A DNA stretch of 64,000 bases, from the NCBI GenBank assembly GCA_002189035.1, contig NEEC01000013.1, positions 1 to 64,000 on the forward strand, in the 5' to 3' direction. The position numbers were made by a program, and so were the translations under genes. The notes beneath the pieces were generated by a model that was not told the DNA's origin, searched no databases, and was given only the letters and a program-made list of their open reading frames with translations. This document shows, one piece after another, positions 33,525 through 63,662 of this stretch; within the stretch, counting starts at the first letter, position 1; each line of letters begins with the position of its first letter. This stretch comes from Utricularia gibba (Eukaryota > Plantae > Magnoliophyta).

Positions 33525-33527
33525 TTT

Positions 33528-33539
33528 TGGTATCAGAGC
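33528..33539 (+). promoter_or_regulatory. Primer-binding site (tRNA-Met type) of CRM-1
   Basis: TGGTATCAGAGC 3 nt downstream of the 5' LTR. Confidence 0.92.
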
Positions 33540-34356
33540 TTTGGGTTCCTTATCCTTATTATTATCCAGTTCTTGTTTGAGTTATTCCATTCCTGCCTAT
33601 TCAAAAAAAAAAAAAAAAAAAAAATCGTTCAAGCCAAGTCCTTATTACTTTTGGCTTTAGTACAAAAAAAAAGGGGGTTCACAGGAAGTTGATTGAAGAA
33701 GAGCTCGAAATTGAGTGTCAATTGAATAGCAAGAACACATTGAATATCATTTTCAAGTGTGCAAGAGGATAAGGAGTGTGAAGGTGAACATCCATTACCC
33801 ATCACTATCATCCATTATTATGTATGTTTAAATTGTGGCCCACCTCTCTACTTTTCCCATTCCACCAAGCAACCACTTTATTGTTGTTTTACTTATCTTC
33901 AATTCCCATCCCCTGTCATTCACGTGTCCCCACCTTTCCATTTGACTATTCTCTTTGTTGATTGCCCATTCCTGTATTTCTATAGTTTAGCAAGCAACAC
34001 ATTTCGTGTGTAGTGCTCTATTCTCTGATTTCATCTGTTCTTACGTTGTTGTCCATCCTTCCTATTTATCTATTCCAACAAGCAACCAATTTAATTTAAA
34101 CACTTCCCTTTGTCTCCATCTTGAGACTATTAATACTGCCACCCTCACCTAACTCCATCATTACACTATAATCAATACCAATCTGGAAGTGATTAATTCG
34201 TTAGATGCCATGAGAACAAGCATGATGACATTAAAGAGTGCATCAAGGACTTGAAGCTTGAGTATTGAGTGGTAAATCTTGTGTGTGTTTCTTTGTTCTT
34301 TTTAGTTTAGTCTCTTTTCTTCCTTGCTGCTCGTTTTCTTTTGTCCAGTATTTAGG

Positions 34357-36711: not shown

Positions 36712-38678
36712 TCAAGAAAAATCATGCATTTCATTGGGGAGATGAGCAGGAACATGCTTTCAAACAACTCAAGAATAAGCTTTGCTCAACACCTCTCCTA
36801 GCACTTCCAAATTTTTCTGATACTTTTGAAATTGAATGTGATGCATCAGGTTTAGGGATTGGTGCTGTGTTGATGCAAAAGGGACGTCCACTTGCTTATT
36901 TTAGTGAGAAGCTTCATGGTGCCACCCTCAACTATCCAACATATGACAAAGAGTTGTATGCGTTGGTTAGAGCTTTGGAGACATGGCAGCACTACTTATG
37001 GCCTAAGGAGTTCGTGATACACACTGATCATGAGTCTCTCAAACATTTGAAGGCTCAAGTAAAGCTGAATAGAAGACATGCTAAGTGGGTGGAATTCATT
37101 GACACATTCCCATATGTGATCAAATACAAGAAAGGTAAGGAGAATGTGGTTGCTGATGCTTTATCTCGAAGGTACACTCTCTTAGCCAATCTTGATGCAA
37201 GAATTCTTGGATTTGCTTCCATCATTGACTTATATGTTCATGATCACGATTTTGGGGATATTTATAAGGCATGTGAACTTGCTACATCTGGACTATTCTT
37301 CAGGAAAGATGGTTTTCTTTATAGGAAAGATAGGCTGTGCATTCCTTCTTGCTCCATACGTGATTTGATTGTTAGAGAAGCTCATGGTGGGGGACTAATG
37401 GGACAATTTGGTGTTAAGAAGACTCTTGATACTCTCACCCAACATTTCTTTTGGCCACACATGAGAAGGGATGTTGAAAGAATTTGTTCTAGATGTATCT
37501 CTTGTAGGAAGGCTAAATCAACCACTGCCCCTAATGGTTTGTATACTCCACTCCCTACTCCTTCCCAACTATGGGTGGACATTTCTATGGACTTTGTTTT
37601 AGGCTTACCTCGTACCCAAAGGGGTAGAGATTCAATTTTCGTTGTTGTGGACAGGTTTTCAAAGATGGCACACTTTATTCCCTGCCATAAAACTGATGAT
37701 GCATCTCATGTGGCTGATCTCTTCTTTAGGGAAGTTGTTAGACTTCATGGTATGCCCCTAACTATTGTCTCTGATCGAGATCCAAGGTTTCTTAGTCACT
37801 TTTGGAGAGTTCTTTGGAGTAAACTTGGCACTAAGCTGTTATACTCAACAACATGTCACCCTCAAACCGATGGGCAAACTGAGGTAACTAATCGCACACT
37901 TTCTACCTTACTTAGGATTATGATTAAATCAAATCTTAAGACTTGGGAGGAATGTTTGCCACTTGTTGAGTTTGCTTACAATAGAACCATGCATCTGACT
38001 ACTAAATTATCTCCATTTGAAGTCGTTTATGGTTTTAATCCTCTTACACCTTTGGATATGTTACCTTTGCCTTGTGATGAGAAAGTTAGTTTAGATGGCA
38101 AGAAGAGAGCTGATGCAATCAGAAGATTGCATGAAAAGGTGAAACAACAGATTGAATGCAACAATGCAAAGTATGCATCAGCAGCAAACAAGGGGAGACG
38201 CAAAGTTGTATTTGAACCTGGAGATTGGGTTTGGCTTCATTTTAGGAAGGAGAGATTTCCCACAAAGAGAAAGTCCAAACTTCTACCTCGTGGAGATGGC
38301 CCTTTCCAAGTTGTTGAGCGCGTTAATGATAATGCGTACAAGCTAGATTTACCAGGTGAGTATTCTGTTCATTTAACTTTCAATGTTGCTGATTTGTCTC
38401 TTTTCGACATGGATACAGATTCAGGGACGAATCTTCCTAAAGAAAGGGGGGATGATGAGCCCCAGGAAGATAATGAAGTGTATTTGAAGAATGATGAGGA
38501 GTTTGTTCAAGTGAACAAATTAAAAAGAAAGATGATTCCACCAGGACCAATGACTAGGAGCAAGACAAAGATGGTTGAAGATACACTTAAGGGTCTACTC
38601 AATACCATTGGAATCAAACATGGGCTTGAAGACATCCCATCAAAAGAGCTCAACTACTTGAAGATGGACTTAACTTAG
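36708..38678 (+). CDS. pol: CRM-1 RNase H-integrase with C-terminal CR-type motif encoded in the 3' LTR
   Basis: ORF 36708..38678: [30 protein letters not shown]...C..C zinc finger, [20 protein letters not shown]-type RGDGPFQV, then [17 protein letters not shown] inside the LTR. It is the frameshifted continuation of the upstream ORF, not an independent gene. Confidence 0.9.
38439..38452 (+). promoter_or_regulatory. Polypurine tract of CRM-1
   Basis: AAAGAAAGGGGGGA immediately 5' of the 3' LTR. Confidence 0.88.
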
Positions 38679-39056
38679 AGCATTGGGCTTGTTAGACTTT
38701 TCTATTTCATTTAGTTTGGACTATGTAATGTTAGAGCCCAATTCTAGAGTATAAATACTCTAGAGATGTACTAATTCAGGATCTTTGGTCATTTTATGTA
38801 TCTTGTGAGGATTCCCCTCTCCTTTGAGTGCTTGAACACTCTTAACTTATCAAGCTTTGAGCTTGTGGCGTTCTAGGATTATCACTTCCAATCAATCTCT
38901 CTTTTCTGAAGTGTGGCTCCTAATTTTCTTTGTTTCGAAGTCTGGTTGCAAGAGATTTATTCTCTTGAGGGTAGACTTGGGTGGGTTCTCTTCTAAGCTT
39001 CAAAATCACCTCTTTTTCGTGGGTTGCTAATCTCTATAGATTAGAGGGTCACATCA
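38453..39056 (+). repeat. CRM-1 3' LTR
   Basis: TGATGAGCCCC...GGGTCACATCA, followed by TSD TTTAA. Confidence 0.97.
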
Positions 39057-39424
39057 TTTAACATGGCTGATTCCCAAAGAGGTTTATTGCCCATGACACA
39101 TAGATCACTATCAAAAGTGGGGTGCCCCAAAATAGAAGAAGATAGGGATTAGATGGCTCCAATCCCACATGCTTCTCCTATTAGGTCAATAATGTATACC
39201 ACACTGTGTACTAGACCAGATGTGTCATATGCTTTAAGTGTTACAAGCAGATACCAGTCGAACCCTAGAATGGATCATTGGACTGCGCTCAAGAGCATTC
39301 TTAAGTACATAAGAAGGACTAAAGACATGTTCCTGATTTATGGTGGTCAAGATCTCGAAATGGGAGACTATGTTTCCAATCTCATTTGACTTGATGACTC
39401 AATCAAGATACATATTCACCCTAA
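39057..39424 (+). pseudogene. pol: Continuation of the Angela copia RT/connection, truncated at the start of RNase H
   Basis: KRF|NMADSQRG resumes across the CRM-1 TSD; ORF 39153..39389 has CTRPDVSYALSVTSRYQSNP. Sequence then jumps into LTR sequence. Confidence 0.85.
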
Positions 39425-40580
39425 ATAGCTAGAGTATTTGTGAAATGAGGATATCAAAAATACGGATAAGCTGGCACACATTGAGTTCCCTAAACAGTTT
39501 AGGCAATGGTTCTCACAATTGATGTAATGAGATTACTAGAACCTATGTGTGAGTGTCGATTAGAGAATCGATTCACTGGATGACTCATCTTCGAGATGCT
39601 ACTATGGGAAGCTAACCAATTGTTAGTAGCAAGATCTCGAATATGACAGCCGTGCAAGTAAGCTTCGACTTGAGGTCAACAAAGTTATCTTGATCCTAAG
39701 CTCACATTTTCGCTCATTACTAAAGGGAGCCTAACCATGGCTTGCCTAGTATGGATGAGTAGGGATGTGACTCCTTAAGGTTGGAGATAGTTGATTGATC
39801 AATAAAGGATTCATCACTCATGTTAGTGATGAGATCATATCTCAAGTAAATGCATCAAAGCCTAACAGTAAGTCCTGGGCCCAAGGTAATGACACTCGAA
39901 TTGTTTGAGTAGGTCATTAAGTGTTAGTGTTTGCATGCAATTATAAGTTTGATACATCAGAAAGACACACACCCATGTTCTGGTATCGAATGAGATATAG
40001 GTATGATGAAAGTTGTTCATTGCATGGTAGCTGGTCATGTAAAGACTTAATCAGTTCACCTGATTATTCTTACATCTTGGGGATCATGATATGTTGCTAG
40101 ACATCACTCATGATCGATAATGATGGATTTGATTAATAAATCCATTATTACGGCCTTGATTGAAGAAGCCTATAGGGTCACATACAATAGTGAAGTCACT
40201 CATCGATATAAAATAGAATGACACAATTACATGAGATGTAATTGGTAAAGTGGATAAATTAAATAGAGAATTATTTTGAGATTAATATTCTTTAAACTCA
40301 AAATAAAAGATCTCATATAGGCGTTTTTCTCTACTAGCACCTGAGAAATTCAACCAGCATTCAAGACCCTTGAGAAGGTTATCGACGGAGTGCTCCACGT
40401 GTGGATACCATAGAGGCCGTCTGCTATTGGCGGTTGGTGAACAATGGAGTCATCTGAAAGGTACTTCGAACATCCCTATGTCTTATGTATACCGTATTCC
40501 AAGATCTGTGTTGGGTGTTTCTCAAAAGTTTTAAAATTCCACTGCTTTTGAGACATACGATGTCTACGAGAAACCCAGCA
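39425..40580 (+). repeat. Angela-type LTR, 5'-truncated with an internal deletion; probable 3' LTR of the host copia
   Basis: Homologous to 29435-30925 from CTAGAGTATTTGTGAAATGAGG onward; ends GAGAAACCCAGCA; lacks ~140 bp near 40320. Confidence 0.85.
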
Positions 40581-41236
40581 CTTTAAGGAGCATCCAGTCT
40601 GATTCTCTGTCATCACTTTGAATTTTCGGAAGATATGAGGAACTTCTGACTTGCTTTTCAGAAAGTAAACCCAACAATAACATGAATAATCATCAATGAA
40701 TGTAAAAAAATATCTACTCCCCCCCAATGAACATTCCTTAAATGGTCCACAAACATCTGTATGCACAAGCTGTAATTTCTCCTTTGCTACTGAATCACTG
40801 GAATAAAATGGCTTTCTACACTGTTTACCTTGATGGCACACTTCACATATGGCATTAGAAAACTTGATGTCTTTCAATTCCAGTACATCCTTATTCTTCT
40901 GCAATATTTTCAGATTGTTGAAGCTATAGTGCCCAAAACGTTTGTGCCAAAGGCTGCTTTGATCCTGAAGTGAGAAAATACAACTTTTATGATCACTGAC
41001 CGTGATTTGGTAGAGGTTGTAGGTGGTCAACACAGCATGGAATTCAATCTTCGTTTTTGGATAGGCAACCTTAACTTTAGTGGTTATACCACTAGCATCC
41101 TTCATCAGCTCAATGTCAAAACCTTGCCTGCTCAATTGGACAAAGCTCAACAGGTTCCTTTTGAGGTTTGGTGAATAATAAACATCATCAACTTGAACAA
41201 TTCCTTCTTTTAGCAAGAGTAAACTCCAGCAATGGA
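40581..41236 (-). pseudogene. pol: Ty1/copia pol fragment (end of protease region, GAG-pre-integrase, start of integrase core), different lineage from Angela
   Basis: ORF 40476..41342: DVYYSPNLKRNLLS, LWHKRFGH, CEVCHQGKQ, LVHTDVCGP, YFLKSKSE, ENQTGCSLK, then cut by the Angela LTR. Confidence 0.88.
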
Positions 41237-42028
41237 TGTCGTAGACCATAACATCAACCCCTCCTAATTGAGAGTTACGTAATACCTCTCTAATGATCAT
41301 GGTTATGTATGAAATCAATACAGGATGGCTATGTGGACCCACACTCCTAGCAACATGGTTTTAACCATGGGATTCATGGCTAAATATGTCAGACATGTCT
41401 GAGGCATCCCTATGGGATAAGCCAGTCAAGAAACACCAGGGAACATGTTTTATGCATGCTATGGTCTAAGTTTAGAGGTGGTGTTCGGTTAGTGGCTCTT
41501 CTAAACACTACTAAAGGACTTAGGCAATACATGACATTTTTCCTAAGATCTGGAGGTGATGCCTAAGCTCAAGGGTTAAGGGGATTGGGCAAAGATAGAC
41601 AATGGGACTCACTACTTGGATATGTGCTTGACTTTGAGTCTTTATGCTCAAACACTTTTTCTTCACTTCATTCATGTTTATATTTAATCAAAATTCAGTA
41701 GCATGACCACTCTATGTTTTAACTTATTCCAGGTGTAGGGGGGAATGGCGGAAGGTCTGGTGATCAACCAAAGTAGGAGTTTAGCTGTAGAAGTTGTGGT
41801 AGATCAAAAATAGCTCTTGGAACCTTAACTACGTTGTGAGGAAAATGCTTAGTAGGCTGGACATCGTTCCTTTTGCATGTTTGAACAGTTGTGACTTAAT
41901 ATACATGTAGCCATCTTAACGATATTTCTCCATGTTACCAAGGGGTTAAGTCGCCTAGAGTCCTAACGTTTGATGGGACTTGGCAGTCATGCCTCATGCC
42001 TCTTGAGCCTTGGGCATGGGTCCTGACA
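41237..42028. mobile_element. Probable solo or recombinant LTR (~790 bp) of unknown family
   Basis: Bounded by TGTCG...TGACA (TGTC/GACA inverted ends); the right end GGGTCCTGACA resembles gypsy LTR termini; no ORF. Flanks (ATGGA / AGCAG) are not a TSD. Confidence 0.4.
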
Positions 42029-43077
42029 AGCAGCATGCTCAATCAGATGATGGTCAAGGCACTAGGATACAAAACACACTCACGTGTTGTGCACACAGCT
42101 TTACCTATTGCTTAACCAAGTGATCTCTCTATCTTTGTGTGCTGTTGGAGAAAAGCCATCTGGAGGTCAAGCATTCGAGTGGCGAAAGGGATAAAGTATG
42201 CATGTTGCGAGGCGTGATCAACTTCCTAAGCAATACCAATTACCTATGGTTAGGTAGTGCTTCCCTATTTGACGAAACGAATGTGGGGTGTGGGAGCTGA
42301 GCGGGATATCTGTAGACTCATCTAAGGAAGAGGTTGAGAGGTTAAGCTTGATGGATTACGAGGAATGTTATCATCTTCTTTGCAAAGCCTAGTGGGAAAA
42401 TGGAATTTCGCACCAGGAGTGGATGCCATGAGGGTCGAATTCCTAAGAGGAAGTGTTCGTGTATTCCGTGAGCCTTGTGGATTTGAGGGACAAGTGGTCG
42501 GTGGTCAAGTTATGGGCTTGGGGTTAGGATTCTTGGCACTCTAGATCCACGATCAATATGTTCTTCAATGCTCTACGACTCACTTGTCATTGAATCATGT
42601 CCACTCAATAATTGCTTACGTGGCTCGCAACGTATTTTTGTTAAAGATGGTATCTTGTAAACTGCATGGTTGAAGGTTTTTTCCTCTCAAAGATATAGTG
42701 GCATGCCCACTTTGGTGTCCAAACATTTTGGAGAGTAGGGTGGGAGTCATCTAAAGGTTGGATAGCACATCCACACCGTACCTACTCCATAAGGTGAAAT
42801 CAAAATTTTTAATATTTCCATCACACGTTGTTGGAGATCGGTGAAGTGCGTGGAGGCTCCTTGGCCACATTCTAATATTTATTGGATGTTGGCTGAGTTT
42901 GTTGCACCACATAACACCCTCAAACAAGTCCCGATGATGCACCAAGATCCACTATAGAGTGAACTCATGAATCCTTTGCGTGCGTCTCACCATGTTACCA
43001 TGGAACATCCTAAGAGAAAGAACCGGGATACACTAAGCAGTATGGGATCCTGTTGGTGTTATAACCCAAGTCGTTGC
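42029..43077 (+). repeat. Diverged satellite monomer (~1.48-kb type), left part
   Basis: Colinear with the array monomer from AGCAGCATGCTCAATCAG to GGGATCCTGTTGGTGTTATAACCC; carries a 127-bp block (42238-42364) missing from the array monomer. Confidence 0.9.
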
Positions 43078-43714
43078 TGATGTGACCCTCAAATCCAAAG
43101 AGATTAGCAACCGACGAACAAAAGGTGATTTAGAAGCTTAGAAAGGAATGCACCCAAGTGTACCCTCAAGAGAATGAATCTTTTGCAACCAGACTTTAAA
43201 AGAAATAGAATTTAGGAGCCACACTTTAGAAGGAGAAGGAAATGGAAGCGATAATCCTAGGACACCACAAGCTCGAAGCTTGTTAAGTCAAGAGTGTTCA
43301 AGCACTCAAAGAAGAGGAAAATCCTCTCAAGATACATGAAAATGAACTAAAAGTCCTTCAAAGAGTACATGCCTAGAGTATTTATACTCTAGAATTGGGC
43401 TATAACATTACAAAGCCCAAACTTAATAACAAGGAAAGGCCTTGCAAGTCCAAGAACACACATAAAGCATGAGGAGATGTTTTGGGCTCTAAGGTATATG
43501 TAGAGTCCAATAGTTGAACTCCTTTAATGGAAATACTTCAGGCCCAATGTTGATTCCAATAGTGTTGAGTAGAGCCTTAAGATTAGCTTCAACCATCTTG
43601 CTCTTACTTCTTGTAATTGGTCCTAGTGGAATGATCTTTGTCTCTAATGTGTTCACTTGCACATCATCCTCATCATTCCTTAAATATGCTTCATTAGCTT
43701 CTTGGGGCTCATTT
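43078..43714 (-). repeat. CRM-2 3' LTR
   Basis: Begins TGATGTGACCCTC on + (reverse of GAGGGTCACATCA); adjacent pyrimidine tract CCCCCCCTTCTTT is the PPT on the minus strand. Confidence 0.85.
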
Positions 43715-46590
43715 TACCCCCCCTTCTTTAGAAAGATTCGTCCCTGAATCTATATCCATTTGGAAAAGAGACAAATCAGCAACATTGAAAGTTAAATGAA
43801 TAGAATACTCACCTAGTAAATCTAGCTTGTATGCATTATCATTCACGCTCTCAACAACTTGGAAAGGGCCATCTCCACGAGGTAGGAGTTTTGACTTCCT
43901 CTTGGTTGGAAATCTCTCTTTCCTGAGATGAAGCCAAACCCAATCTCCAGGTTCAAATACAACTTTCGTCTCCCCTTGTTTGATGTTGATGCATACTTTG
44001 TGTTATTAGATTCAATCTGTTGTTTCACCTTCTCATGCAATCTTCTGATTGCTTCAGCATGTTTCTTCCCATCTAAACTAACTTTCTCATCACAAGGCAA
44101 AGGCAATATATCCAAAGATGTAAGAGGATTAAAGCTATAAACCACGTCAAATGGGGATAATTTAGTAGTGAGATGCATGGTTCTATTGTAAGCGAACTCA
44201 ACAAGTGGCAAACATCCTCCCATGTCTTAAGATATCATTTAATCATCATCCTAAGTAAGGTAGAAAGTGTGCGATTTGTTACCTCTATTTGGCCATCAGT
44301 TTGAGGGTGACATGCTGTTGAGTACAACAGCTTAGTGCCAAGTTTACTCCAGTGAACTCTCCAAAAGTGACTGGGAAATCTTGCATCTCGATCAGAGACA
44401 ATAGTAAGGGGCATACCATGAAGTCTAACAACTTCCCTAAAGAAGAGATCAGCCACATGAGATGCATCATCAGTTTTGTGACAACGGATAAAGTGTGCCA
44501 TCTTTGAAAATCTGTCCACAACAACAAAAATTGAATCTCTACCCCTTTGGGTACGAGGTAAGCCTAAAACAAAATCCATATAAATGTCCACCCATGGCTG
44601 AGAAGGAGTAGGGAGTGGAGTATACAAACCATTAAGGGCAGTGGTTGATTTAGCCTTATTACAAGAGATACATCTAGCACAAATTCTTTCAACATCCCTT
44701 CTCATGTGTGGCCAAAAGAAATGTTGGGTGAGAGTATCAAGAGTCTTCTTAACACCAAAATGTCCCATTAATCCACCACCATGAGCTTCCCTAACAACCA
44801 AATCACATATGGAACAACAAGGAATGCACAACCTATTTTTCCTATAAAGAAAACCATCTTTCATAAAGAATAGTCCAAATTTAGCAAGTTCACATACCTT
44901 ATAAATGTCTCCAAAATCGTGATCATTAGCATATAAGTCAATATGCTAGCAAATCCAAGAATTCTTGCATCAAGATTAGCTAAAAGAGTATACCTTCGAG
45001 ATAAAGCATCAGCTACCACATTCTCTTTTCCTTTTTTGTATTTGATCACTTATGGGAATGTGTCAATGAATTCCACCCACTTAGCATGTCTTCTATTCAG
45101 CTTTCCTTGACCTTTCAGATGTTTGAGGGACTCATTATCAGTGTGTATGACGAACTCCTTAGGCCACAAATAGTGCTGCCATGTCTCTAAAGCCCTAACC
45201 AATGCATACAACTCCTTGTCATACATTGGATAGTTGAGGGTGGCACTATGAAGCTTCTCACTAAAATAAGCAAGTGGACATCCATTTTGCATCAATACAG
45301 CACCAATGCCTAAACCTGATGCATCACATTCAATTTCAAAAGTATCAAACAAATTTGGAAGTGCTAGGAGAGGTGTTGAGCAAAGCTTGTCCTTGAGTTG
45401 TTGGAAGGTATGTTCCTACTCGTCTCCTCAATGAAATGGATGATTTTTCTTGATCAATTGAGTGAGTGGTGTTGCTATAGAGCTGAAATCCTTAAAAAAC
45501 CGTCTATAGAAACTCGCTAAGCCATCGAAACTCCTAACTTCACCAACTGATGTAGGTGTTGGCCATTGCGTAATTGCTCTCACTTTCTCTTCATCCATAG
45601 CTACTCCTGCATCACTTACAACATATCCAAGAAAAGAGACACTATTCATGCAAAAGGCACACTTATTGATGTTAGCAAACAACTTTTCTTTTCTAAGAGT
45701 ATCTAACACATTCTTCAAATGTCCTACATGTTCCTGAAGACTCTTGCTATAGATCAGAATATCATCAAAATAGACAACTACGAATCTAGCTATAAAGGCC
45801 TAAGAACGTGATTCATCAATCTCATAAAGGTGCTAAAAGCATTAGTCAAACCAAAAGGCATAACAACCTACTCATACAAACCAAACTTAGTTTTAAAAGC
45901 GAGTTTCCACTCATCACCTTCCTTCATTCTAATATGATGATATCCACTTCTCAAATAAATCTTAGTAAAAACACAAGCACCATGCAATTCATCAAGCATA
46001 TCTTCAAGTCTAGGGCTAGGATGTCTATACTTCATTGTGATGTTGTTGATGGTGTGACAATCAGTGCATATCCGCCAAGTTCCATCATACTTAGGAACTA
46101 ATAACACCGGCACAGCACAAGGGCTCATGCTGTCATGCACAAATCCTCTAGACATCAATTCCTCAACTTACTTTTGTATTTCCTTCGTCTCCTCTATATT
46201 GGTTTGGTATGCTAGTCGGTTTGGGAGCTGTGCTCTAGGCACAAGGTCAATTTGGTGCTCAATCCCTCTAATTGGAGTTAATCCTTGAAGTTCTTCTGGA
46301 AATACATCTTCATATACCTGTAAGAGAGACATAATACAAGATGGAATGGGTGGAGCATTGTTAGGTAAATTAGGAACTTCATCCTTGTACATAAGTAGAA
46401 GGAATGGTTGCCTAGCATGAAGTGAGTGTCTAATCTCACTTGGGCTTGCTAAGAGATTCTCATTCTTTCTTTCAATTTCTAACACTCTCATGTTTTCACT
46501 TTATGTTTTGCACTCATTGTCACCCCTTTGCCCACTCAATTACTTCCCATCTCTTCTTTTCACTCATTTTTACTCCACTCTCTTTTTGCT
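43715..46590 (-). pseudogene. pol: CRM-2 linker-RT-RNase H-integrase, multiple stops and frameshifts
   Basis: ORF fragments 46168..46491, 45868..46158, 45428..45718, 45050..45352, 44235..44864 and 43843..44223 align with CRM-1 pol. Confidence 0.92.
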
Positions 46591-46595
46591 CTTCC

Positions 46596-47754
46596 CATAT
46601 CAAATCATATCTTCATCAAGATCTTATCTTGTGGAGACATGTATATGTTCCAAATTATATCTACATGAGATCTTTTATTTTGATTTTAATCAGTATTAAT
46701 CTCAAAATATCTCTCTATTTAATTTATCCACTTTACCAATTACATCTCATTTAATTGTGTCATTCTATTTTATATCGATGAGTGACTTCACTATTGTATG
46801 TGACCCTATAGGCATCTTCAATCAAGGCCGTAATAATGGATTTATTAATTAACTCTTAATTAATCAAATCCATCATTATCGATCATGAGTGATGTCTAGC
46901 AACATATCATGATCCCCAAGATGTTAGAATAATCAGGTGAACTGATTGAGTCTTTCCATTACCAGCCACCATTCAATGAACAGCTTTCATCATACCTATA
47001 TCTCATTCGATACCAGAACATGGGTGTGTGTCTTTCTGATGTATCAAACTTATAATTGCATGCAAGCACTAACACTCAATGACCTACTCAAACAATTCGA
47101 GTGTCATTACCCTGGGCCCAAGACTTACTGTTAGGCTTTTATGCAATTACTTGAGATATGATCTCATTGCTAACATGAGTGATACATCCTTTATTGATCA
47201 ATCAACTATCTCCAACCTTAAGGAGACACATCCCTACTCATCCATACTAGGCAAGTCATGGTTACGCTCCCATTAGTAATGTGCGAAAATTTCAGCTTAA
47301 GATCAAGATATCTTTGTTGACCTCAAGTCTAAGCTTACTTGCACGGCTGTCATATTCAAGATCTTGCTACTAACACTTGGTTAGCTTTCCATAGTAGCAT
47401 CTCGAAGATGAGTCATCCAGTGAATCGATTCTCTAATCGACACTCACACATAGGTTCTAGTAATCTCATTACATCAATTGTGAGAACCATTGCCTAAACT
47501 GTTTAGGGAACTCAATGTGTGCCAGCTTATCCGTATTTTTGATATCCTCATTTCACAAATACTCTAGCTAGGGAGATTTAACTTGATCATGAGTGCTTGA
47601 AGAATCTCACATTATGATCTCATCATAATTTCTATAGCACATAGATCAAGTAGAGGATTTTATCAATGATATAAATTCGATTACAATTCAAAGTAAATAT
47701 CAAAAGATAAGATTTTCCAATGAGTTGATTGTCTCTAGAACATATACACTAATA
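46596..47754 (-). mobile_element. Angela-type LTR, 3'-truncated, inside CRM-2 gag
   Basis: Reverse complement of 29435-~30590; 5' end GATTGTCTCTAGAACATATACACTAATA abuts the gag codons EDMIHMA. The other end is fused to the CRM PR-RT linker; no TSD. Confidence 0.88.
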
Positions 47755-48646
47755 GCCATATGAATCATGTCCTCCATCTCAATGTAGTGATGAAGCTCCA
47801 CAATATTTACAATCTCCTTATTCATCTCATGAAGGAACCTTGCCATAGTTGCTTCCCTATCTTCATGAAGATTGGCTCTAATCATCAAGATCTCCATTTC
47901 CTGCCAATATTCCTCCACTGACCTGGAGCCCTTCTTGAGATTCTGCAAACGTTGATAAACATCTCTTTGGTAATGATTTGGAACAAATCGCCTCCTCATG
48001 ACTCTTTTCATCTCAGCCCAAGTATGAATTGGTTCTTCAGAGTCAATCCTTCTTTTAGCCACCAATTGATCCCACCAAATTACTGCATAATCACTGAATT
48101 CCATGAAAGCCAATCTGACTTTCTTTTCTTCAGAGAAGTTGTTGCAATCAAAAACATGTTCTACTCTTGTTTCCCATTGGAGATATGCATCTACATCATT
48201 CTTTCCTTGAAATTGAGGTATCTTCATCTTGATGTTGTTAACATCCTTTTCAATTTTTCCTTCATCTCTTCTACCTTCTTGATATCGAAATCTTCTTGTA
48301 TCCCATGTACAAAATCATTTTCAGCATGTTCGAGTTAGTCATCTTCTTCATCCTCATTCAGGATTGGATCTCTTCTTCCAACGGTCCTTTCACTTCCTTG
48401 ATCATTGAAATCATGTTCAGTATCAATGCGTTGAGGCATTTAAACACCTTGACCCCTTCTGGTAGCATAATTATTTCGTCCTTGGGCTCTTGCAACATTT
48501 TGTAGAGAGTTTTCGTATTCATCCAGCTTGACATTAATATTTTCTAGAATGCGATGCAATCTTGCAAATTCTTGTTGCATAGCTCTCAAAGTGAACCTCT
48601 CATCCGATGAGTCATCCTTTTCATGCTCACTTCTTGAATTTGACAT
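47755..48646 (-). pseudogene. gag: CRM-2 gag (N-terminal part)
   Basis: [20 protein letters not shown] (ATG ~48646) and ORF 47700..48227 ([10 protein letters not shown]...EDMIHMA) nearly match CRM-1 gag. Confidence 0.9.
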
Positions 48647-49452
48647 TCTAAACAGAAGACAAAAGAAACGAGCAACAAAAGAAAGAAAAGAGAATAAAGT
48701 GAAAGAACAAAGAAACACACACAAGGTTTACCAATCAATCCGCAAGCTTCAAGTCCTTGATGCACTCTATAACATCATCATGCTTGGCCTCATGGGGTCT
48801 CAAGAATTAATCACTTCCAGATTGGTATTGATTATGGTGTTATGATGGGGTTAGGTAAGGGTGGTAGTGTTAATTGTCTCTAGATAGAGACAAAGGGGGA
48901 TTGGTTGAATTATGTTGGTTGCTTGTTGCAATAGATAAATAGGAGGGATGGACAACAAGGTAAGAACAGATGAAAACAAAGGAATGAGCACTACACACGA
49001 AATATGTTGCTTGTGAAATTGTAGAAATACAGGAATGGGCAATCAACAAAGAGAATAGTCAAATGGAATGGTAGGGACAAGTAAATGACAGGGGAAGGGG
49101 ATTGAAGATAAGAAAAACAACAATAAAGTGGTTGCTTGGTGGAATGGGAAAAGTAGAGAGGTGGGTCACAAATAAACATATACAATAATGGATGATAGTG
49201 ATGGGTGAACGATGTTCACCTTCACACTCATTCTCTTCTTACACCCTTGAAGTTGATATTCAAGGTGTTCTTGCTATTCAATCGAAACTCAATTTCGAGC
49301 TCTTCTTGAATCAACTTCCTGTGCACCCTTTTTTTTTTGTGCCAAAGCCAAAAGTACGAAGACGAACGTGGATTGAATTTTCTTTTTCTCAATAAGCAAG
49401 AACAGAAGAACTAAAACAAGAACAGGATACTATTAAGGAGAAGGAACCCAAA

Positions 49453-49464
49453 GCTCTGATACCA
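49453..49464 (-). promoter_or_regulatory. Primer-binding site of CRM-2
   Basis: GCTCTGATACCA on + (TGGTATCAGAGC on -), 2 nt from the 5' LTR. Confidence 0.9.
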
Positions 49465-49466
49465 AA

Positions 49467-50047
49467 TGATGTGACCCTCTAATCTAAAGAGATTAGCAAC
49501 CCACGAATAAGAGGTGATTTAGAAGCTTTTGAAAGAAAGGGAATTTAGGAGCCACACTTAAGAAGGAGAAGAAAATGGAAATGATAATCCTAGGACACCA
49601 CAAGCTCGAAGCTTAATAAGTCAAGAGTGTTCAAGCACTCAAAGAAGAGGAAAATCCTCACAAGATACATCAAAATGAACTAAAAGTCCTTCAAATAGTA
49701 CATGTCTAGAGTATTTATACTCTAGAATTGAGCTAGCACATTACAAAGCCCAAACTAAATAACAAGGAAAGGCCTAGCAAGTCCAAGAATACATGTGAAG
49801 CAAGAGGAGATGTTTTGGGCTCTAAGGTATATGTAGACTCCAATAATTGAACTCCTTTAATGGAAATACTTCAGGCCCAATGTTGATTCTAATAGTGTTG
49901 AGTAGAGCCTTAAGATTAGCTTCAACCATCTTGCTCTTACTTCTTGTAATTGGTCCCGGTGGAATGATCTTTGTCTCTAATGTGTTCACTTGCACATCAT
50001 CCTCATCGTCCCTTAAATACTCTTCATTAGCTTCTTGGGGCTCATCA
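49467..50047 (-). repeat. CRM-2 5' LTR
   Basis: TGATGTGACCCTC...GGGGCTCATCA; ~56 bp shorter than the 3' LTR near 49530. Confidence 0.9.
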
Positions 50048-50564
50048 ATTGCTCAAGGTGTACCCACTTGGTATCATTTGATGATAAATGAATTGTGAAG
50101 TACTTGGTTAGAGGCCATCGAATGGACTTTATGGTGCTTTGGACTTGCACATTAGTGCTGGTCTAATCTCCACGCATCTCCATGTATTTAAACGGCAGCA
50201 ACAATAGGCCACCGGTCTCATTCTCCGGTTCATTCGTTAAGAAGTCCAAAACACCTCCACATATCGATAAAGTTAGCGAGATCTGTCCAGCAATGGATGA
50301 AAAAGAGGAGCTAGTGCGCATGGATGTGAACACCTTGAAGAGCATAGGAGTTCGACAATAGAGACCAGCCATGGGTAGAATGGTGTCTATGCTTGAAAGA
50401 AGACGACCACCCATTGTACTTTGTACGTTGCATCGCACCTGTTTGAAAGAGAGGATGGAAATGTGGCCACACTAGTAAAGGTGCACGAGCAACATGCTCT
50501 ATCAGATGATGGTCAAGGCATTAGGATACGGGACACACTCGCGTGTTGCGCACACATGACTTCA
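50048..50564 (+). repeat. Diverged satellite monomer, right part (continues 43077)
   Basis: ATTGCTCAAGGTGTACCCACTTGG...GTGAAGTACTTGGTTAGAG...GCGTGTTGCGCACAC is colinear with the array monomer. Confidence 0.9.
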
Positions 50565-51131
50565 TGATGAAATCATGGATGTTACTGATGATAACAATGA
50601 AGATAAAGGACAGAAGATCAATAACCCTCCATTGATTTCAATTGGGTCAATCACTAGATAAAGAGCACGAAAGAATCAAGAAGCGCTTAAGGGCTTATGG
50701 GCCAATCAACAAAGCTTTGAGATGTTTGTCATGGAATTTAACCTTTTTAAAGTAGACCAATTTGATTAGAGGAGCCCATTAGTCTCAAGTACATTATTAC
50801 TACTTTTCTATGAGGAGGCCCAATACTTCATCTATATAAGAAGTGTCTTACTCTTGTTTGGAACAACTTTGATAGTAATCACTTTTGAGAGCACTTCTCC
50901 TTCCTTGAGTTCTTGTAGAACTTAGACTTATCAAGCCTTGTTTGTGGTGTCTAGTGTGTGGTTTACCACTCCCAATTCCTTCTCTAATTCTGTGAGTGTG
51001 ATACCATTTTATAGTTTGGGTTGCAAGGATCTTTCAATCCTTGAGGGCCAACTTCTTTTTCGTGAGGGATTGCTTCTTTTCAACCAATATCTGGTTTGCC
51101 AATCACTTGTTGATTGGAGGGTCGTATCAGG

Positions 51132-51143
51132 TGGTATCAGAGC
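51132..51143 (+). promoter_or_regulatory. Primer-binding site of CRM-3
   Basis: TGGTATCAGAGC 2 nt after the LTR end TATCA. Confidence 0.88.
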
Positions 51144-51837
51144 GAATCTTTTTCTTCTCTATATCCTATCTATCTTGTTGTTGTTTCGTTCCAAAGAAAT
51201 GAAACAAAAAAAAACCCAGATCTATCTTGATTTGCTTAACTTATCTTTTGCTTCTCTCTTCCTCTGAAAAAAAAACAAAGGAGGGGTTCCTTATCTTTGT
51301 TTGTTCCATCCTATTCTTCTGGATTGGTGCAAAAAGAAAAAAAACGTGTTAAAGGGAGAAAGAAGGTTAGAAACTTGATTCCATTGAATTTTCTACTTCC
51401 TAGATAAAAGAAAAGTAAAAAAAGAAGATTAGCTACTTGAATCCATTGAATCTTCTAGTTACCAAACAAAAGAAAAGTCAATATTGTACAACTTTGTCTA
51501 TTGTCACACTTACATTCCATTTTAACTCTTTTCAATTGTCTACCAACCTCTTTTGTACTAATCACAACAAGTTACATTCTATCCTTCCATTCCTACTCTT
51601 ACTTAATCATAATTACTATTACCATCACCAAGTCCTATATTACTCATTTGCTTATTTGACTCATTACTCTAGCCACCCTTATCTCTTTGAACCACACTTA
51701 GATTGATCATTTAAGGTTTATTGAGTCTTAAAGTTCAAGAGGACTTGAGGTTTAGAAATTCTCTCCTTCTGTTACTTCTATCTTTCTTTCGTTGTTCTCT
51801 TTCCTTCGTTTTGTCTACACTTTTCTCTTGTAGTAGA

Positions 51838-52680
51838 ATGTCGAGCTCTAATAACCCTGCAGAAGAATCAAATGTTATGGATGTTCGTTTTGTACTTAAT
51901 GCAATGCAAAGTGAGTTCAGGAGATTGCAAAGATGCATGGAACAAATCCACATCAAACTAGAGGACCATGATGAATCTCTCAAGAACATAAAAAAGCAAG
52001 AAGAGGACAGTGTCTCCCATGGAAGAACAAGAGTTCCAACACACCATAGCAGAAGGAATTCTCAACAAGAAAAAGATTCGGAATCTGAGGCTGAAGAGGC
52101 AAAGCATGGTGAACAAAGGAGAAACAATAACAACATCCATGATGAGTATGATTCATCTGGTGGTGATGATATAGAACGAAGATCTCAAAGAAATTGGAGG
52201 CCAAATTGTTATGCAAGATATGACGAAAGACCAAGGGGTAGATACGCACGTCAATATAAGGAATTTGATAACATCAAAATGCAAATCCCTCCTTTTCAAG
52301 GGAAAAATGATCCAAATGCCTACTTGGAGTGGGAGACTCGTGTGGAGCACGTGTTTGATAACTATTCTGAAGTCAAGAAGATCAAGCTTGTTGTTGTTGA
52401 GTTTACAGATTATGCCATAACTTGATGGGATAAAATAGTACTCAACAAAAGACAAAATGATGAAGAACCAATTCAAACTTTGGCTGAAATGAAGAGGATC
52501 ATGAGAAAAAGGTTCATTCCCAGCCACTACCAAAGATATCAACACCAAAACTTGCAGAAGCTCACACAAGGGAGCAAAACCGTGGAAGAATATTGGCAAG
52601 AAATGGAAGTGTTAATGATTCGAGCCAATATAACAGAGGATAGGGAAGGTACAATGGCAAGATTCCTCTATGGTTTCAAC
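51838..52680 (+). pseudogene. gag: CRM-3 gag fragment
   Basis: ORFs 51721..52425 and 52480.. separated by an in-frame TGA at a Trp position; homologous to CRM-1 gag but clearly diverged. Confidence 0.85.
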
Positions 52681-54572
52681 ATGCTCAATCAGACGATGAT
52701 CAAGGCATTAGGTTATAGGGGAAACTATCGTGTTGCGCACACGACTTTACCTATCGCTTACCCAAGTGATCTCTCTGTCTTCGTGTGTAGTCGAAGTAAA
52801 AGGTATCTAGAGGACATGTATTGGAGTGGCGAAAAGGATTTAGTATGCATGTTGCAAGGCGTGATCTACTTCCTAAGCAATACCAACACCTTAGGGTCAG
52901 GTTGTGCTTGCTTATGTAGCGAAATGAATGTTGGGTGTGAGAGCTGCGCGGGGTATCTGTAGACTCGTCCAAAGGAGAAGGATGGGAAGTCCAGTTGGAT
53001 GGATTATGAAGAACGTGACCCTCTTCTTTGCAAAGGGTAGTGCGAAAATGGTGTTTTCCATAAAGAGTGGATCCCGTGAGGGTCGAATTCCTAAGGAGAG
53101 GTTGTCGTTCGTTTCGCAGTCAATGTGGATTCGAAGGACAAGTGATCTGTGGTTGCGTTATAGTGTTGGGGTTAGGAGTCGTGGCCCTTTTCATCCATGA
53201 TCGATATGATCCTCGGCACTCTATTTCTCACTTCTCTGCAAATCATGTCAACACAAAGATGGCTTACTTGCTTTGCTATGTGTTTTGGTTTAGGAAGGTC
53301 TTCCCTAAACCGCATGGTTGACGGTGTTCTACCCCTAAACCTATGGTGGCATAGCGACTTTCGTGTTGAAAAATTCTCCAGATCTAGTTTGAAGTCATCT
53401 AGAGGCTGGATCCTGAATCCAACTTTGTTTGTGATTCAGTCAAGGTCGCGAGGTGGGTAGCTTGAGGATTGGACATGACCTCAAGTGTTTATAACGTACT
53501 ACAACCATGCCATGTTACAATGATCATGTGCACTTATGTTGTGTAGTAAGGCTATATTAGAAGATTGGTGGGACCTCATGTTATAGGAATTTGATTCAAT
53601 GATGGCACATTGTACATGGGTTTGGTTTTCGAGAAGACGAATGAGAAATGGAGCCCCATTATGAAGAGCATTGCGAATAAAGTCATCAACACGATAGCTA
53701 CTCTATAGAGTGAATTGACAATTGCAATTCCTATTGTTGCCATCATAGGTGGTTGGAGATTGGTTCAGTGGATGGAGGCTCATAGGACACATTCTAATGT
53801 CCATTGTCTGTTGGCTGAGTTTACAGAACGACATAACACCCTAAAACGAGTCACAATGGTGCACCATTATGCACAAGGAAGTGAACTCGTGACTCCTTTG
53901 AGTACGTCTCACCGTGTTAGCATGGATTTAACAAGAGGAAGCCACATGATAAACAAGGCAGTATGGGATCCTGTTGGTGTGTTTGCTCAAGTTATAACTC
54001 ACGGTGTACTCCCTTGGTATCGTTTGACAATACATAAATGCTGAAATACTTGGTTAGAGCCAATGGGATGGACTTTATGGTGCTTAGGACTAGTGCATCA
54101 GTGCTGGTGAAGTCTCCATGCATCCCCATGTATTAAAACGGCAGCATCAACACGACACCAGTCTAATTCTCCCATCCATGCATTAAGAAGTTCAAAACAC
54201 ATCCACATCACAATAAAAGTAGTGATGACTGTCGAGTAGGGGAGAAAAGGAAGGAGGTAGTGTTCATGGATTCGAACGTCTAGATGTCCATGAGACTTCC
54301 ATACTAGAGTCCAACATTCAACAGAATGATGTCCATGCTTGAAAGAAGATGACTACGCATTGTGCTTTATACGTTGGATCGCACATGTTTGAAAGAGGGG
54401 ATGGAACAGTGGCATCCCTACTAAAGTCACACGAGCAACATGGCCATTCAAACAATGGTGAAGGCATTCAACTACTAGGGAAACTAGTATGTTGTACACA
54501 CAACCTTTACCAAATTCTTTCCTAAGTGATCTTTCTATCTTCATGTGCACTCAGAGTAAGAGGCATGAAGAT

Positions 54573-56022
54573 TGTTGGTATATGTGTTCTAGAGACAATC
54601 AACTCATTGGCAAATCTTATCTTTTGATGTTTATATTGAATCGTGATCAAGTTTACATCTTTGATAAAATCCTCTACTTGATCTATGTGCTATAGAAATT
54701 ATGATGAGATCATAACGTGAGATTCTTCAAGCACTCATGATCAAGTTAAAAACTCCCTGGCTAGAGTGTTTGTGAAATGAGGATATCACAAATACGGATA
54801 AGCTGGCACACTTTGAGTTCCCTAAATTGTTTAGGCAATGGTTCTCACAATTGACGTAATGAGATTACTAGAACCTATGTGTGGGTGTCGATTAGAGAAT
54901 CGATTCACTAGATGACTCATCTTCGAGATGCTACTATGGGAAGCTAACCAAGTGTCAGTAGCAAGATCTCGAATATGGCAGCCGTGCAAGTAAGCTTAGA
55001 CTTGAGGTCAACAAAGTTATCTTGGTCTTAAGCTCACATTTTTGCTCATTACTAATGGGAGCCTAACCATGGCTTGCCTAGTATGGATGAGTAGGGATGT
55101 GACTCCTTAAGGTTGGAGATAGTTAATTGATCAATAAAGGATTCATCACTCATGTTAGCGATCAGATCATATCTCAAGTAATTGCATCAAAGCCTAACAG
55201 TAAGTCCTGGGCCCAAGATAATGACACTCGAATTGTTTGAGTAAGTCATTGAGTGTTAGTGCTTGAATGCAATTATAAGTTCGATACATCAGAAAGACAC
55301 ACACCCATGTTCTAGTATCGAATGAGATATAAGTATGATGAAAGCTGTTCATTGCGTGGTGGCTGGTCATGGAAAGGCTCAATGAGTTCACCTGATTATT
55401 CTTACATCTTGGGGATCATGATATGTTGCTAGACATCACTCATGATCGATAATGATGGATTTGATTAATTAAGAGTTAATTAATAAATCCATTATTACGG
55501 CCTTGATTGAAGATGCCTATAGGGTCACATACAATAGTGAAGTCACTCATCGATATAAAATAGAATGACACAATTAAATGAGATGTAATTGGTAAAGTGG
55601 ATAAATTAAATAGAGAGATATTTTGAGATTAATACTGATTAAAATCAAAATAAAAGATCTCATGTAGATATGATTTGAGATGTCACAAAATATCTATCAA
55701 AAAGATTTAGATCTTGAGATCTCCTCGAAGGTCTTCGTGCTCTCTGAGACTGATCCACAAGGAGGCGTTTTTCTCTACTAGCACCTGAGAAATTCGACCA
55801 GCATTCAAGAGCCTTGAGAAGGTTATCGACGGAGTGCTCCATGTGTGGATACCATAGAGGCCGTCTGCTATTGACGGTTCGTGAACAACGGAGTCATCTG
55901 AAAGGTAATTTAGAATCCCTTTGTATAATGTATACCGTATTCCAAGATCTGTGTTGGGGGTTTCGCAAAAATTTTAAAATTCCGCTGCTTTTTAGACATA
56001 CGATGTCTATGAGAAACCAACA
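54573..56022 (+). mobile_element. Angela-type LTR, near full length
   Basis: TGTTGGTATATGTGTTCTAGAGAC...GAGAAACCAACA, homologous to 29435-30925. Confidence 0.92.
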
Positions 56023-56790
56023 CCATGTTCTGGTATCGAATGAGATATAAGTATGATGAAAATTGTTCATTGCATAGTGGTTGGTCATGGAAAGGCTCAA
56101 TCAGTTTACCTGATTATTCTTTAATCTTGGGGATCATGATATGTTTCTAAACATTACTAATGATCGATAATGATGGATTTGATTAATTAAGAGTTAATTA
56201 ATAAATCCATTATTATGGCCTTGATTGAAGAAGCCTATAGGGTCACACACAATAATGGAGTCACTCATCGATATAAATAGAATGACACAATTACATGAGA
56301 TGTAATTGGTAAAGTGGATAAAATAAATAGAGAGTTATTTTCAGATTAATATTAATTAAACTCAAAATAAAAGATCTGATATAGATAAGATTTGAAACAT
56401 ATATATATCTCCACAAGATAAGATCTTTACGGAGATTGGATTTGATATGTTACCAAATATCTATCAAAAGATTTAGATCGACAGATCTGCTTCTAACATC
56501 TTCGTGCCCTTTGAGAATGATCCACAAGAGGGCGATTTCATCTACTAGCACCTGAGAAGATCGACTAGCATTCTACAGCTTTGAGAAAGTTATCGACGGA
56601 GTGCTTCACGTGTGGATACCATAGCGGCCATCTACTATTGACGGTTGGTGAACAACGGAGTCCTCTAAAAGATATTTTCAGCATCTCTTAGTCTGACATA
56701 TGCCGTATTCCAAGATCTACGTTGGGAGTTTCTTGAAAATTTTTTAAATTCCGCTGCTTTTCTGACATGCGATGTCTAGAAGAAACCGTA
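56023..56790 (+). mobile_element. 3' half of a second Angela-type LTR in tandem
   Basis: Starts at LTR-internal CCATGTTCTGGTATCGAATG and runs to a degenerate end GATGTCTAGAAGAAACC. Satellite resumes with TAGAT, against AAGAT before 54573. Confidence 0.85.
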
Positions 56791-58441
56791 TAGATGACTG
56801 GCATTGGAGTTGCGAAAAGGATGTGCTATGCATGTTGCAAGGCATAATCTACTTCATAAGCAATACCATCACCTTAGGGTACGCTTTTGCTTCCTCATAT
56901 AACGAAATGAATGTAGGGTGTGAGAGCTGCGAGCAGTATCTATAGACTCATCCAAAAAAGAAGGATTTGAAGTCTAGCTGAATGGATTATGAGGAGCATT
57001 ACTCTCTTCTATGCAAAGGCCAATGCAAAAATGGTGTTTTCCATTAGAAGTGGATGCCATGAGGGTTGAATTCCTAAGGAGAGCTGCCTATTCGTTCCGT
57101 GGTCAATGGGGATTCGAAGGACAAGTGGTCCATGGTTGAGTTATGGGGTTGGAGTTACGATTTGTGGCCCTTTGGATCCACGATCGATATGTGCTTCAGA
57201 ACTCTATGACTCACTTCTTGGCGAATCATGTCAACACAAAGATAGCTTAAAACGGCATCATCAACATGACACTAGTCTAATTCTCCTATCCATGCGTAAA
57301 GATATTCAAAACACCTTCACATTACGATAAAACTAGCAATACATGTTCAATAGTGGAGAAAAGGTAGAAGGTAGTGCGCATGGATGTCAACGCCTCGAAG
57401 ACAATGGGAGTTCAATATTGGAGACCAGCAACCGACAGAATGGTGTCTATGTCTTCAAGAAGACAATCACGCATTGTGCTTTATATGGTTGATCGCACAT
57501 GTTTAAAAGAGAGAATGGAACAGTTACATCCCTACTACGGTCGCACGGGCAACATGCTCAATCAGATGATGGTGAAGGCATTAGGTTTCTAGGGAAACCA
57601 GCATGTTGCACACACGCCTTTACCTATTGCTTACCCAAGTGATCTCTCTATCTTCGTGTGCAGTCAGAGTAAAAGGCATGTAGAGGAGGGGCATTGGAGT
57701 CGCGAAAAGGATGTGGTATGCATGTTGAAAGGTGTAATCTACTTCGTAAGCAATACCAACACCTTAGGGTCAGCTTGTGCTTTCTCATATAACGAAATGA
57801 ATGTTGGGCATGCGACGTTCACGTGGTATTTGTAGACTCATCTGAAAAAGAAGGATGAGAAGTCCAACTAGATGGATTATGAGGAACATTACCCTCTTCT
57901 TTTCAAAGGGTAGTGCGAAAATGGTGTTCTCCATCATCAGTGGGTGCCAAGAGGGTCGAATTCCTAATGACAGGTGCCCATTCATTCCGTGGTCAATGTG
58001 GATTCGATGGACAAGCGGTCTGTGGTCAAGTTATGGGGTTGGGGTTAGGATTGGTGGCCCTTTCAATGCACAATTGATATGTTCTTCAGCACTCTAAGGC
58101 TCACTTCTCGACGAATCATGTCAACACAAAGATGCCTTATGTGTGTTATAGTGTATTTGAGTTTACGAAGGTCTCTCATGAACAGCATGGTTGACAGTGT
58201 TTTACCCCAAAACCCTATGGTGGCATGGCCACTTTCGTTTTGAAACAATCTCTATATAAGGGTGGGAGTGATCTAGAGGTTGGATCCCGCATCCAACGTC
58301 GTTGATGATTTAGTCAAGCTTGTGAGGCGGGTGGATTTGGGATTTGACATGACCGTGAGTGTGTAAAATATCCTACAAGCATGCCATGTTATACTGATCA
58401 TGTGCACTTATTTTTTCTAGTAGGCTATGTTAGAAGATTGG

Positions 58442-62750: not shown

Positions 62751-63662
62751 TCTCATGCAAGGCCCCTAGTACATTCAAGCACATCCTCTTCCCCCCCCCC
62801 CCCCCCCCATTCGTAACCAACATGAGATATTATAACTGTCACAAGGCCCCTAGCCATACATGCTTCCCCTCTTCGACAATCATTGTCACAACCAACCCTT
62901 GCTTTCCACGATATTGTCCCCTTTAGGCACCCAGCCCCCATGCTTTTACGTTCCCCCATTATAGAGAAAGATCTTATATAAGATTAGTAAAGTCCCTCAA
63001 TTTAAGCATGTCCCCTCCCCCATCCATAATCAATGTGAGATACTAGAACCATCGTGAGGCCCCTAACCTTACATTCTTCCCCACTTAGATACTCGGAGAA
63101 AGATCAGACATGCAATCATGGCCAATCAGAAAGCACCATGTGTTTTATCAAGGTAATGACATGTGTTTCATTTGGAACAAACAAAGATGAAACATGCAGC
63201 ATGATCAATCAGAAAATGCCACGTGTTTTAATATGGCATTTGCATGTGTTTCATGTAGAATCAAAAGGTACTGTGTATTTTAATCAGTTGGTGATGTGTA
63301 TCTCGTTTAAAGGAATTACAAATAAGCATGAATAATGTTATAAAGAGAAGATAGATGAAGGGAAAAATATTGGAAAGGAGGAAAAGGGGAGGATTGAAGG
63401 GGAATATGCTGATAGAGATATCATTGAGTTTGTAGCATTGTGAACTTCAGTCTCCTAAGAGTTGTGTTGCAAAAATCACATAACTTTGCAGGCTCATATC
63501 AGAGATGTATACAAAAGAGTTGGCTTTGGAAGGAGCTGATTTAGACAAGGATAAGTGGGATGATGGGTTCTGAATGTCAGTGCTATGTTCTATGTGCAAA
63601 TTTGTGCTTACATGACTGTCTATATTGTTCATGATTTTTATGTGTTGATTGACTATGATTCA

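Follow-up and report, generated by a model that had tools for sequence, protein, structure and literature searches.

A young 1.37-kb satellite array beside older, transposon-broken long-unit relatives in Utricularia gibba

The first 64,000 nucleotides of contig NEEC01000013.1 of the Utricularia gibba assembly GCA_002189035.1 (forward strand; hereafter the window) contain a young, near-identical satellite array and, beyond a belt of transposons, diverged copies of the same unit that differ from it in length by two blocks of sequence, block A and block B. Self-comparison divides the window into the array (1–26,789), a region of nested long terminal repeat (LTR) retrotransposons (26,790–42,025) and the diverged, transposon-broken copies of the array unit (42,026–58,441), which comprise four relic units designated R1 to R4. 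All self-comparisons, alignments, trees and block counts were made within this window and describe this one locus. We consider it probable that the locus is layered, that is, that an old array of long units decayed and that a short relative lacking both blocks was recently amplified. An old tandem array of non-coding units of 1.48–1.76 kb would have ceased to be homogenised and would then have been methylated, depleted of CpG, invaded by LTR retrotransposons and trimmed by microhomology-mediated deletions. In the lineage of the young array, block B (127 bp) would most probably have been lost by a break-repair deletion that left a filler of 10 bp. The difference in block A (268 bp) would trace to one event at short direct repeats: a deletion in an ancestor common to R1 and the array is modestly favoured, the alternative being a gain in the lineage of R2–R4. 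The short form without either block would have been amplified very recently by unequal exchange into the near-identical 1.37-kb array, 15 kb from the relics and across the nested transposons. Of this account, the anatomy, the relative ages, the boundaries of the indels and the gradient from edge to core are observed, whereas the direction in which each indel ran, the mechanism and an origin of the array in place are inferred.

The array is very regular. Its 19 phase-matched unit starts, located by self-BLAST and an anchor search, are spaced 1365–1372 bp apart, and the 18 complete units share a pairwise identity of 99.1% with indels included; their alignment has 54 variable columns, 40 of which are indels (31 of these in homopolymer context), and the mean difference by substitution is 0.37%. 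GC content is 48.6%, against 38–42% in the surroundings, the observed-to-expected ratio (o/e) of CpG is 0.92, i.e., undepleted, and no transposon has inserted in 26.8 kb. A coding or RNA origin of the unit was rejected on blank searches: ten open reading frames (ORFs) of the unit gave zero matches in Pfam, the unit gave nothing in Rfam at the gathering score or at E ≤ 1, and a tRNA search found none. With its non-coding unit and regular head-to-tail tandem arrangement, the array is satellite DNA. Sensitive BLAST found no continuation of it beyond 26,789.

A gradient of age extends into the array itself, whose edge units are older than its core. Substitution differences are 0.24% between core units and 0.87% between core and edge, and they grow with the distance between units (over a span of 0.24–0.4%), as would be expected of local unequal exchange. 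The three edge units, which lie closest to the relics, retain states shared by R1 and R2 at several sites (see the table), and an edge unit is basal within the array clade, with 91% support, in a maximum-likelihood tree.

Some smaller features of the array deserve description. Three quarters of its variable columns are single-base indels, mostly in homopolymers, so the assembly is probably an unpolished long-read consensus; most array indel variants are probably long-read errors, and the true identity of the units would then lie above 99.1%. A hypervariable spot of 10–12 bp (window positions ~788–800 and 2151–2163, and the equivalent phase in each array unit) exists in at least eight versions in units that are otherwise nearly identical, including CTTGGTATCG, TGGTATCG and CTGGGATCG; the ancestral form TGGGATCCTG occurs in the three edge units (24,032–24,041, 25,404–25,413 and 26,776–26,785) and likewise in R1 and R2. 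This variability would be due either to a mutational hot spot or to systematic errors of base calling or consensus building at a motif that contains GGATCC. The array terminates a few bp past the hypervariable spot, and the Ty3-type insertion in R1 lies ~25 bp beyond that. At column 112 of the alignment of all units (near unit position 112), a single C/G variant divides the array into 1–13,553 and 13,554–26,789, and a G/A variant beside the hypervariable spot alternates in short runs along the array; together they suggest block-wise local duplications inside it.

The relics, whose boundaries were set by junction reading and a five-way alignment, belong to the same family as the array: the alignments reach an E-value of 1e-169, which excludes chance. 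R2, R3 and R4 are consecutive in tandem, and the period of R2 was verified by the match of 52,677–52,811 to 54,437–54,571. R1 is followed by 72 bp of a next unit and therefore also stood in tandem arrangement. The relic region is what remains of a single old tandem array rather than of two separate ones, and sensitive BLAST found no homology to the family before R1 (42,026) or beyond R4 (58,441). The window thus holds 19.6 copies of the 1.37-kb class, ~2.5 tandem copies of the 1.76-kb class, and a single unit plus 72 bp of the 1.48-kb class. The original prediction, made from the letters of the window, had seen here three generations of one satellite side by side, with successive deletion variants amplified in turn. 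One family, three length classes and an array younger than the relics are indeed what is found; amplification in turn, with the 1.48-kb class as a generation of its own, finds no support in this window, whose sole 1.48-kb unit belongs, like the 1.76-kb units, to the one old array.

That the relics are clearly older than the array is evident from several measures. Kimura two-parameter (K2P) distances are 0.20–0.30 between relics and 0.23–0.43 between relics and array; the CpG o/e of the relics is depleted, at 0.57–0.62; R1 reads TG or CA at 35 of 74 array CpGs; and 5 kb of relic sequence contains three LTR-element insertions with target-site duplications. Transposon insertions and signatures of decay are therefore present in the flank units and absent from the core, as in a layered-expansion locus. 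Two deletions of undoubted direction are found, namely the 867-bp deletion within R3 (TTA overlap) and the junction of a retrotransposon gag with R2 (CAA overlap). As a separate observation, R1 (42,026) and R2 (52,672) start within ~5 bp of one unit phase through different left-junction events, that of R2 being the gag/satellite deletion with its CAA overlap and that of R1 a different one; with ~8 boundaries in the locus, one coincidence of this kind is not very improbable (p ~0.2 by a rough estimate).

Table. Satellite units, blocks and associated LTR elements in the window.
Feature	Position	Strand	Remarks
Young satellite array	1–26,789	+	19.6 head-to-tail units of ~1368 bp, all without blocks A and B; leaves the window at its left end
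GATCCATTCC, example	1464–1473	+	junction identical in all array units
Three edge units nearest the relics	23,128–26,789	+	retain R1/R2-shared states at 4–5 sites, including TGGGATCCTG at the hypervariable spot
Intact Ty3-type element	32,920–39,059		LTRs 99.3% identical; perfect TTTAA target-site duplication; inserted in a copia reverse-transcriptase gene
Relic R1, left part	42,026–43,077	+	1.48-kb type (B present, A absent); 80–82% identity to array consensus
Block B in R1	42,238–42,364	+	127 bp
Ty3-type LTR retrotransposon inside R1	43,078–50,047	-	LTRs 93.6% identical (K2P 0.067)
Relic R1, right part	50,053–50,484	+	completes R1; total 1484 bp
First 72 bp of the unit after R1	50,485–50,556	+	87.5% identity to the start of R1
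5' half of a Ty3 element	50,557–52,671	+	LTR and gag, cut after ...ARFLYGFN; fused to R2 through the 3-bp CAA overlap
Relic R2	52,672–54,431	+	1760 bp; 1.76-kb type, A and B present
Block B in R2	52,885–53,012	+
Block A in R2	53,422–53,689	+	268 bp
Relic R3, left part	54,432–54,571	+	R3 total 894–895 bp
Solo LTR in R3	54,572–56,789	+	2.2 kb; starts TGTTGG...; target-site duplication AAGAT/TAGAT; ~750-bp internal tandem duplication
Relic R3, right part	56,790–57,544	+	B at 56,868–56,995; 867-bp internal deletion at 57,249/57,250 with TTA microhomology
Relic R4	57,545–58,441	+	897 bp, truncated; B at 57,758–57,885; first 147 bp of A at 58,296–58,441

Block B (127–128 bp) is present in all four relics, and its place is occupied in every array unit by the 10-bp GATCCATTCC. 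Block A is found in R2 and in R4, where it is cut off, and R3 is deleted over that stretch; R1 and the array lack it at an identical breakpoint. The flanks of block A, CATCCA (the ancestral left flank) and CATCAA (the last 6 bp of A), match at five of six positions. The three unit types that had been predicted were all recovered: a ~1.76-kb unit with both blocks is R2, its coordinates within a few bases of those first proposed; a ~1.48-kb unit without A and with B at 42,238–42,364 is R1; and a unit without either block, ~1368 bp long and bearing the 10-bp filler, is every unit of the array. The sizes also add up as had been claimed, since the difference between 1760 and 1484 bp is 276, or 268 + 6 plus small indels, and that between 1484 and ~1368 bp is 127 − 10, net of small indels.

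A further possibility is that one or both blocks are transposable-element insertions into an ancestral short unit. The 6-bp direct repeats around block A, with their 5/6 match, speak for such an origin; so many features of insertions are missing, however, that we regard it as very improbable. Block A lacks terminal inverted repeats, TG..CA ends and an A-tail; neither block has an Rfam match, a tail, terminal repeats or LTR ends; and block B has no flanking repeat. A search of the 64-kb window on both strands at word size 7 returned no second copy of A or B outside the relic units, and none occurs within 37 kb of transposon-rich flank, in a window where one LTR family occurs four times and Ty3 elements three times. 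Genuine insertions of comparable age in the relic units, such as the solo LTR of that family, remain plainly recognisable. The original prediction had named target-site duplications or transposon homology of the blocks as the findings that would count against it; transposon hallmarks and second copies are absent from the window, and the repeat at A is ambiguous. An origin of either block as an internal duplication was rejected with the transposon origin, for want of second copies and terminal repeats. As for a templated nearby copy as the source of the 10-bp filler, inspection by eye gave matches at no more than 7–8 of 10 positions, roughly estimated as not above chance.

The order in which the blocks came or went depends on the tree of the units. 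In the unrooted maximum-likelihood tree (TPM3u+F), R2, R3 and R4 form one clade with 100% support and the array units form another, and what remains is a three-armed star, with arms of 0.145 (array), 0.075 (R1) and 0.123 (the stem of the R2–R4 clade). R1 is 80% identical to the array, against 70% for R2, and is also nearer to R2 (75%) than the array is; R1 is simply the shortest-armed unit, closest to everything. In a star-shaped, unrooted tree, to place R1 with the array is to make a claim about the root, and the predicted grouping of the 1.48-kb type with the array therefore hinges on that root.

The two blocks fare differently under this constraint. The presence of B in all four relics, on two arms of the tree, makes B ancestral for any root that is not on the array arm, and the exchange of 127 bp for 10 unalignable bp has the usual shape of a deletion with filler; the loss of B was very probably such a deletion, in the lineage of the array. 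Block A would have been deleted if the root lies in or near the R2–R4 clade and gained if it lies on the R1 or the array arm. Deletion is slightly the better supported explanation of its absence from R1 and the array, because deletions were demonstrably active at the locus and A carries no mobile-element feature. Of the successive deletions originally proposed, that of B is accordingly retained as very probable, and the direction of the change at A rests on the root of a star tree.

A strict nested-deletion series, in which a 1.76-kb ancestor lost A to give an amplified 1.48-kb generation and this lost B to give the 1.37-kb array, has just under an even chance of being correct. The blocks are distributed in nested fashion (A+B+, A−B+, A−B−) with sizes that add up, they lack transposon hallmarks, microhomology deletions were demonstrably at work, and midpoint or clock rooting places the root on the R2–R4 arm. 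The series requires a root inside or next to the R2–R4 clade, however, and the root test under a non-reversible model does not establish one, since it prefers the R1 branch (rootstrap 62%) to R3 (22%) and gives the array arm 3%. It also requires a 1.48-kb generation where the window has a single such unit, in one old array together with the 1.76-kb units, and the array arm is too long, and its transition bias reversed, for a simple descendant of an R1-like unit. A simple order of ancestor and descendant, with the array arising in place from an R1-like unit, is therefore not secure. Midpoint or clock rooting, the non-reversible model, counts of transition direction and the concordance of CpG decay disagree on the root.

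Several observations tell against the layered reading as proposed above. All root positions outside the array clade pass the root test; two degenerate-pattern scans of metagenome contigs yielded 0 matches to outgroup copies; and the 6-bp repeat flanking block A could equally be a target-site duplication or the trace of a microhomology deletion. The remaining points come from the substitutions themselves, counted as private differences with R2 as the third sequence. The array arm has 149 private differences, comprising 73 transversions, 52 AT-to-GC transitions and 24 GC-to-AT transitions, and the R1 arm has 85 (32, 14 and 39, respectively). The array arm therefore has 2.3 times the transversions of the R1 arm (relative-rate chi-square of 16, by hand calculation), and its transitions run opposite to those of R1, which show the usual decay bias. 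Where array CpGs have decayed in both R1 and R2, the product is the same at 15 sites and different at 4, against an expectation of ~50:50 for independent decay (binomial p ~0.01), so many of the differences of R1 and R2 from the array would not be independent decay. The long arm, reversed bias and shared CpG products can be accommodated by an array-arm root or by an unusual course of substitution in the array lineage. Parallel decay of the relics explains part of the bias, as 29 of the 52 AT-to-GC sites of the array arm lie in CpG or CHG context in the array. The remainder would be due either to decay that the relics share, which would place the root on the array arm, or to a gain of CpG or GC-biased fixation along the array lineage.

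These same counts are the foundation of the reverse order, according to which the ancestor most resembled the short form, the relics gained B (1.37 to 1.48 kb) and later A (1.48 to 1.76 kb), and the array escaped methylation-driven decay. If the spectrum of R1 (14 vs. 39) held for the array arm (52 vs. 24), most of that arm would need to be read backwards; the array retains its CpGs (o/e 0.92 vs. ~0.6), the decay product of R1 and R2 is the same at 15 of the 19 CpGs that have decayed in both, and an array-arm root passes the approximately unbiased (AU) test (p 0.125). The price is two rare insertions of anonymous, non-duplicated, non-transposon DNA (127 and 268 bp), the first of which must also have replaced 10 bp, a root position with a rootstrap of just 3%, and an evolution of R2–R4 that is ~2.6 times faster than that of R1; moreover, parallel CpG and CHG decay already accounts for some of the bias (29 of the 52 sites). 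We judge it improbable that the series ran from short to long in this way, with an array lineage shielded from decay and the shortest unit as the best-preserved image of the ancestor. Possible causes of such shielding are hypomethylated centromeric chromatin, GC-biased conversion and selection. If true, the locus would pair a protected, live satellite lineage with dead offshoots. The reversed bias and intact CpGs of the array are the one point of possibly wider importance, as they could bear on whether active arrays escape decay.

R1 could also owe its A-minus, B-plus state to conversion rather than descent, being a mosaic formed by gene conversion or unequal exchange between long- and short-type lineages with tract ends at the indel sites. 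When the unit is cut at the two indel sites and private sites are counted per segment, the ratio of array-private to R2-private sites is 28:25 to the left of B, 31:80 between B and A, and 87:113 to the right of A (Fisher tests, p 0.003 and 0.007). R1 thus attaches much nearer to the array between B and A than elsewhere, the path from array to R2 is constant at 0.25–0.27 per site, and a free scan selects array positions 268–640, nearly the B–A interval. The permutation p of that scan is 0.095, however, a 100-column window test is non-significant (p 0.27), and the effect fades when R2 is replaced by R4 (p 0.066), R3 (p 0.47) or the R2–R4 majority (p 0.087). The signal is weak, and we take the mosaic as a lead that is unlikely, if somewhat less so than the short-to-long order.

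Several retrotransposons lie in and around the relics. The Ty3-type element that splits R1 is bordered by a 5-bp target-site duplication (GTTGC/ATTGC, at 43,073–43,077 and 50,048–50,052). The fusion of the half Ty3 element to R2 produces an ORF (52,480–52,962) that crosses from gag into the satellite. A derivation of the unit from this neighbouring gag was rejected, as comparison with an intact element shows that gag is cut after ...ARFLYGFN and that the repeat follows. The solo LTR in R3 belongs to a family of the form TGTTGG...CCCAACA with four copies in the window (29,435–30,925, 39,428–40,577, 46,596–47,749 on the minus strand, and 54,572–56,789); the CCCAACA end is visible in the first and third copies and degenerate in the solo LTR of R3. 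The first copy is a solo LTR within a copia element, with a perfect AGCAT duplication, and the third is nested inside the Ty3 element that splits R1. The belt between array and relics (26,790–42,025) contains copia gag, integrase and reverse-transcriptase fragments, among others, and the intact Ty3-type element listed in the table, which is very young and is one of three Ty3 elements in the window. Its polyprotein gave no match to the Pfam chromodomain, which would be compatible with membership of the centromeric CRM clade, for which it is a candidate. Short tandem duplications also occur in transposon-derived sequence at 51,359–51,478 (62 bp x 1.9) and 63,099–63,254 (83 bp x 1.9).

Since layered arrays, indel variants and deletions by microhomology are well known, the locus leaves the current picture unchanged; it is a new example, tidy but ordinary, of known layered satellite turnover. 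Its merit is that one 64-kb view takes in a new short-unit array, edge units of greater age, and long-unit relatives, now dead, that are datable by the transposons inserted in them. It is thus well suited for teaching, or for testing, how unit length changes and how the variant to be amplified is chosen. A literature search for a satellite of this unit length returned nothing relevant. The layered-expansion, or age-gradient, architecture is documented for the centromeric arrays of human alpha satellite, in which a new variant expands and older layers are displaced, shrink, and gather mutations and transposons (10.1101/2021.07.12.452052). Shared with it are the homogeneous young core beside older divergent units, the shrinking, transposon-hit flank and the seeding of a new layer by a variant. 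The unit is 171 bp there and 1.4–1.8 kb here, in a plant; a single flank is visible here, the array leaving the window at position 1; the layers here differ by two large indels besides point divergence; and the likeness is one of sequence architecture. In the library model, related satellite variants coexist, with one amplified and others at low copy number (PMC8122249). Coexisting variants with one amplified are also seen here, although that model concerns families shared between species and the present variants lie within one locus of one genome.

The centromeric repeats of potato are examples of long-monomer plant satellites. Recently amplified plant satellites with kilobase units, many of them from retrotransposon tandem repeats, are documented (PMC7004042, PMC7403623). 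The present array resembles them in its kilobase unit, its very homogeneous and recently amplified state and its association with Ty3-type elements, and it differs in that the unit has no similarity to any retrotransposon part in the window. Deletion between short repeats is the standard route by which plant repeats erode; illegitimate-recombination deletions between short direct repeats reportedly have this effect, as described by Devos, Ma and Bennetzen. The overlaps of 3–6 bp in R3, where gag joins R2 and perhaps around block A, and the short filler at block B, are of the same kind, with the difference that at this locus a product of deletion would not merely have decayed but would later have been amplified into an array.

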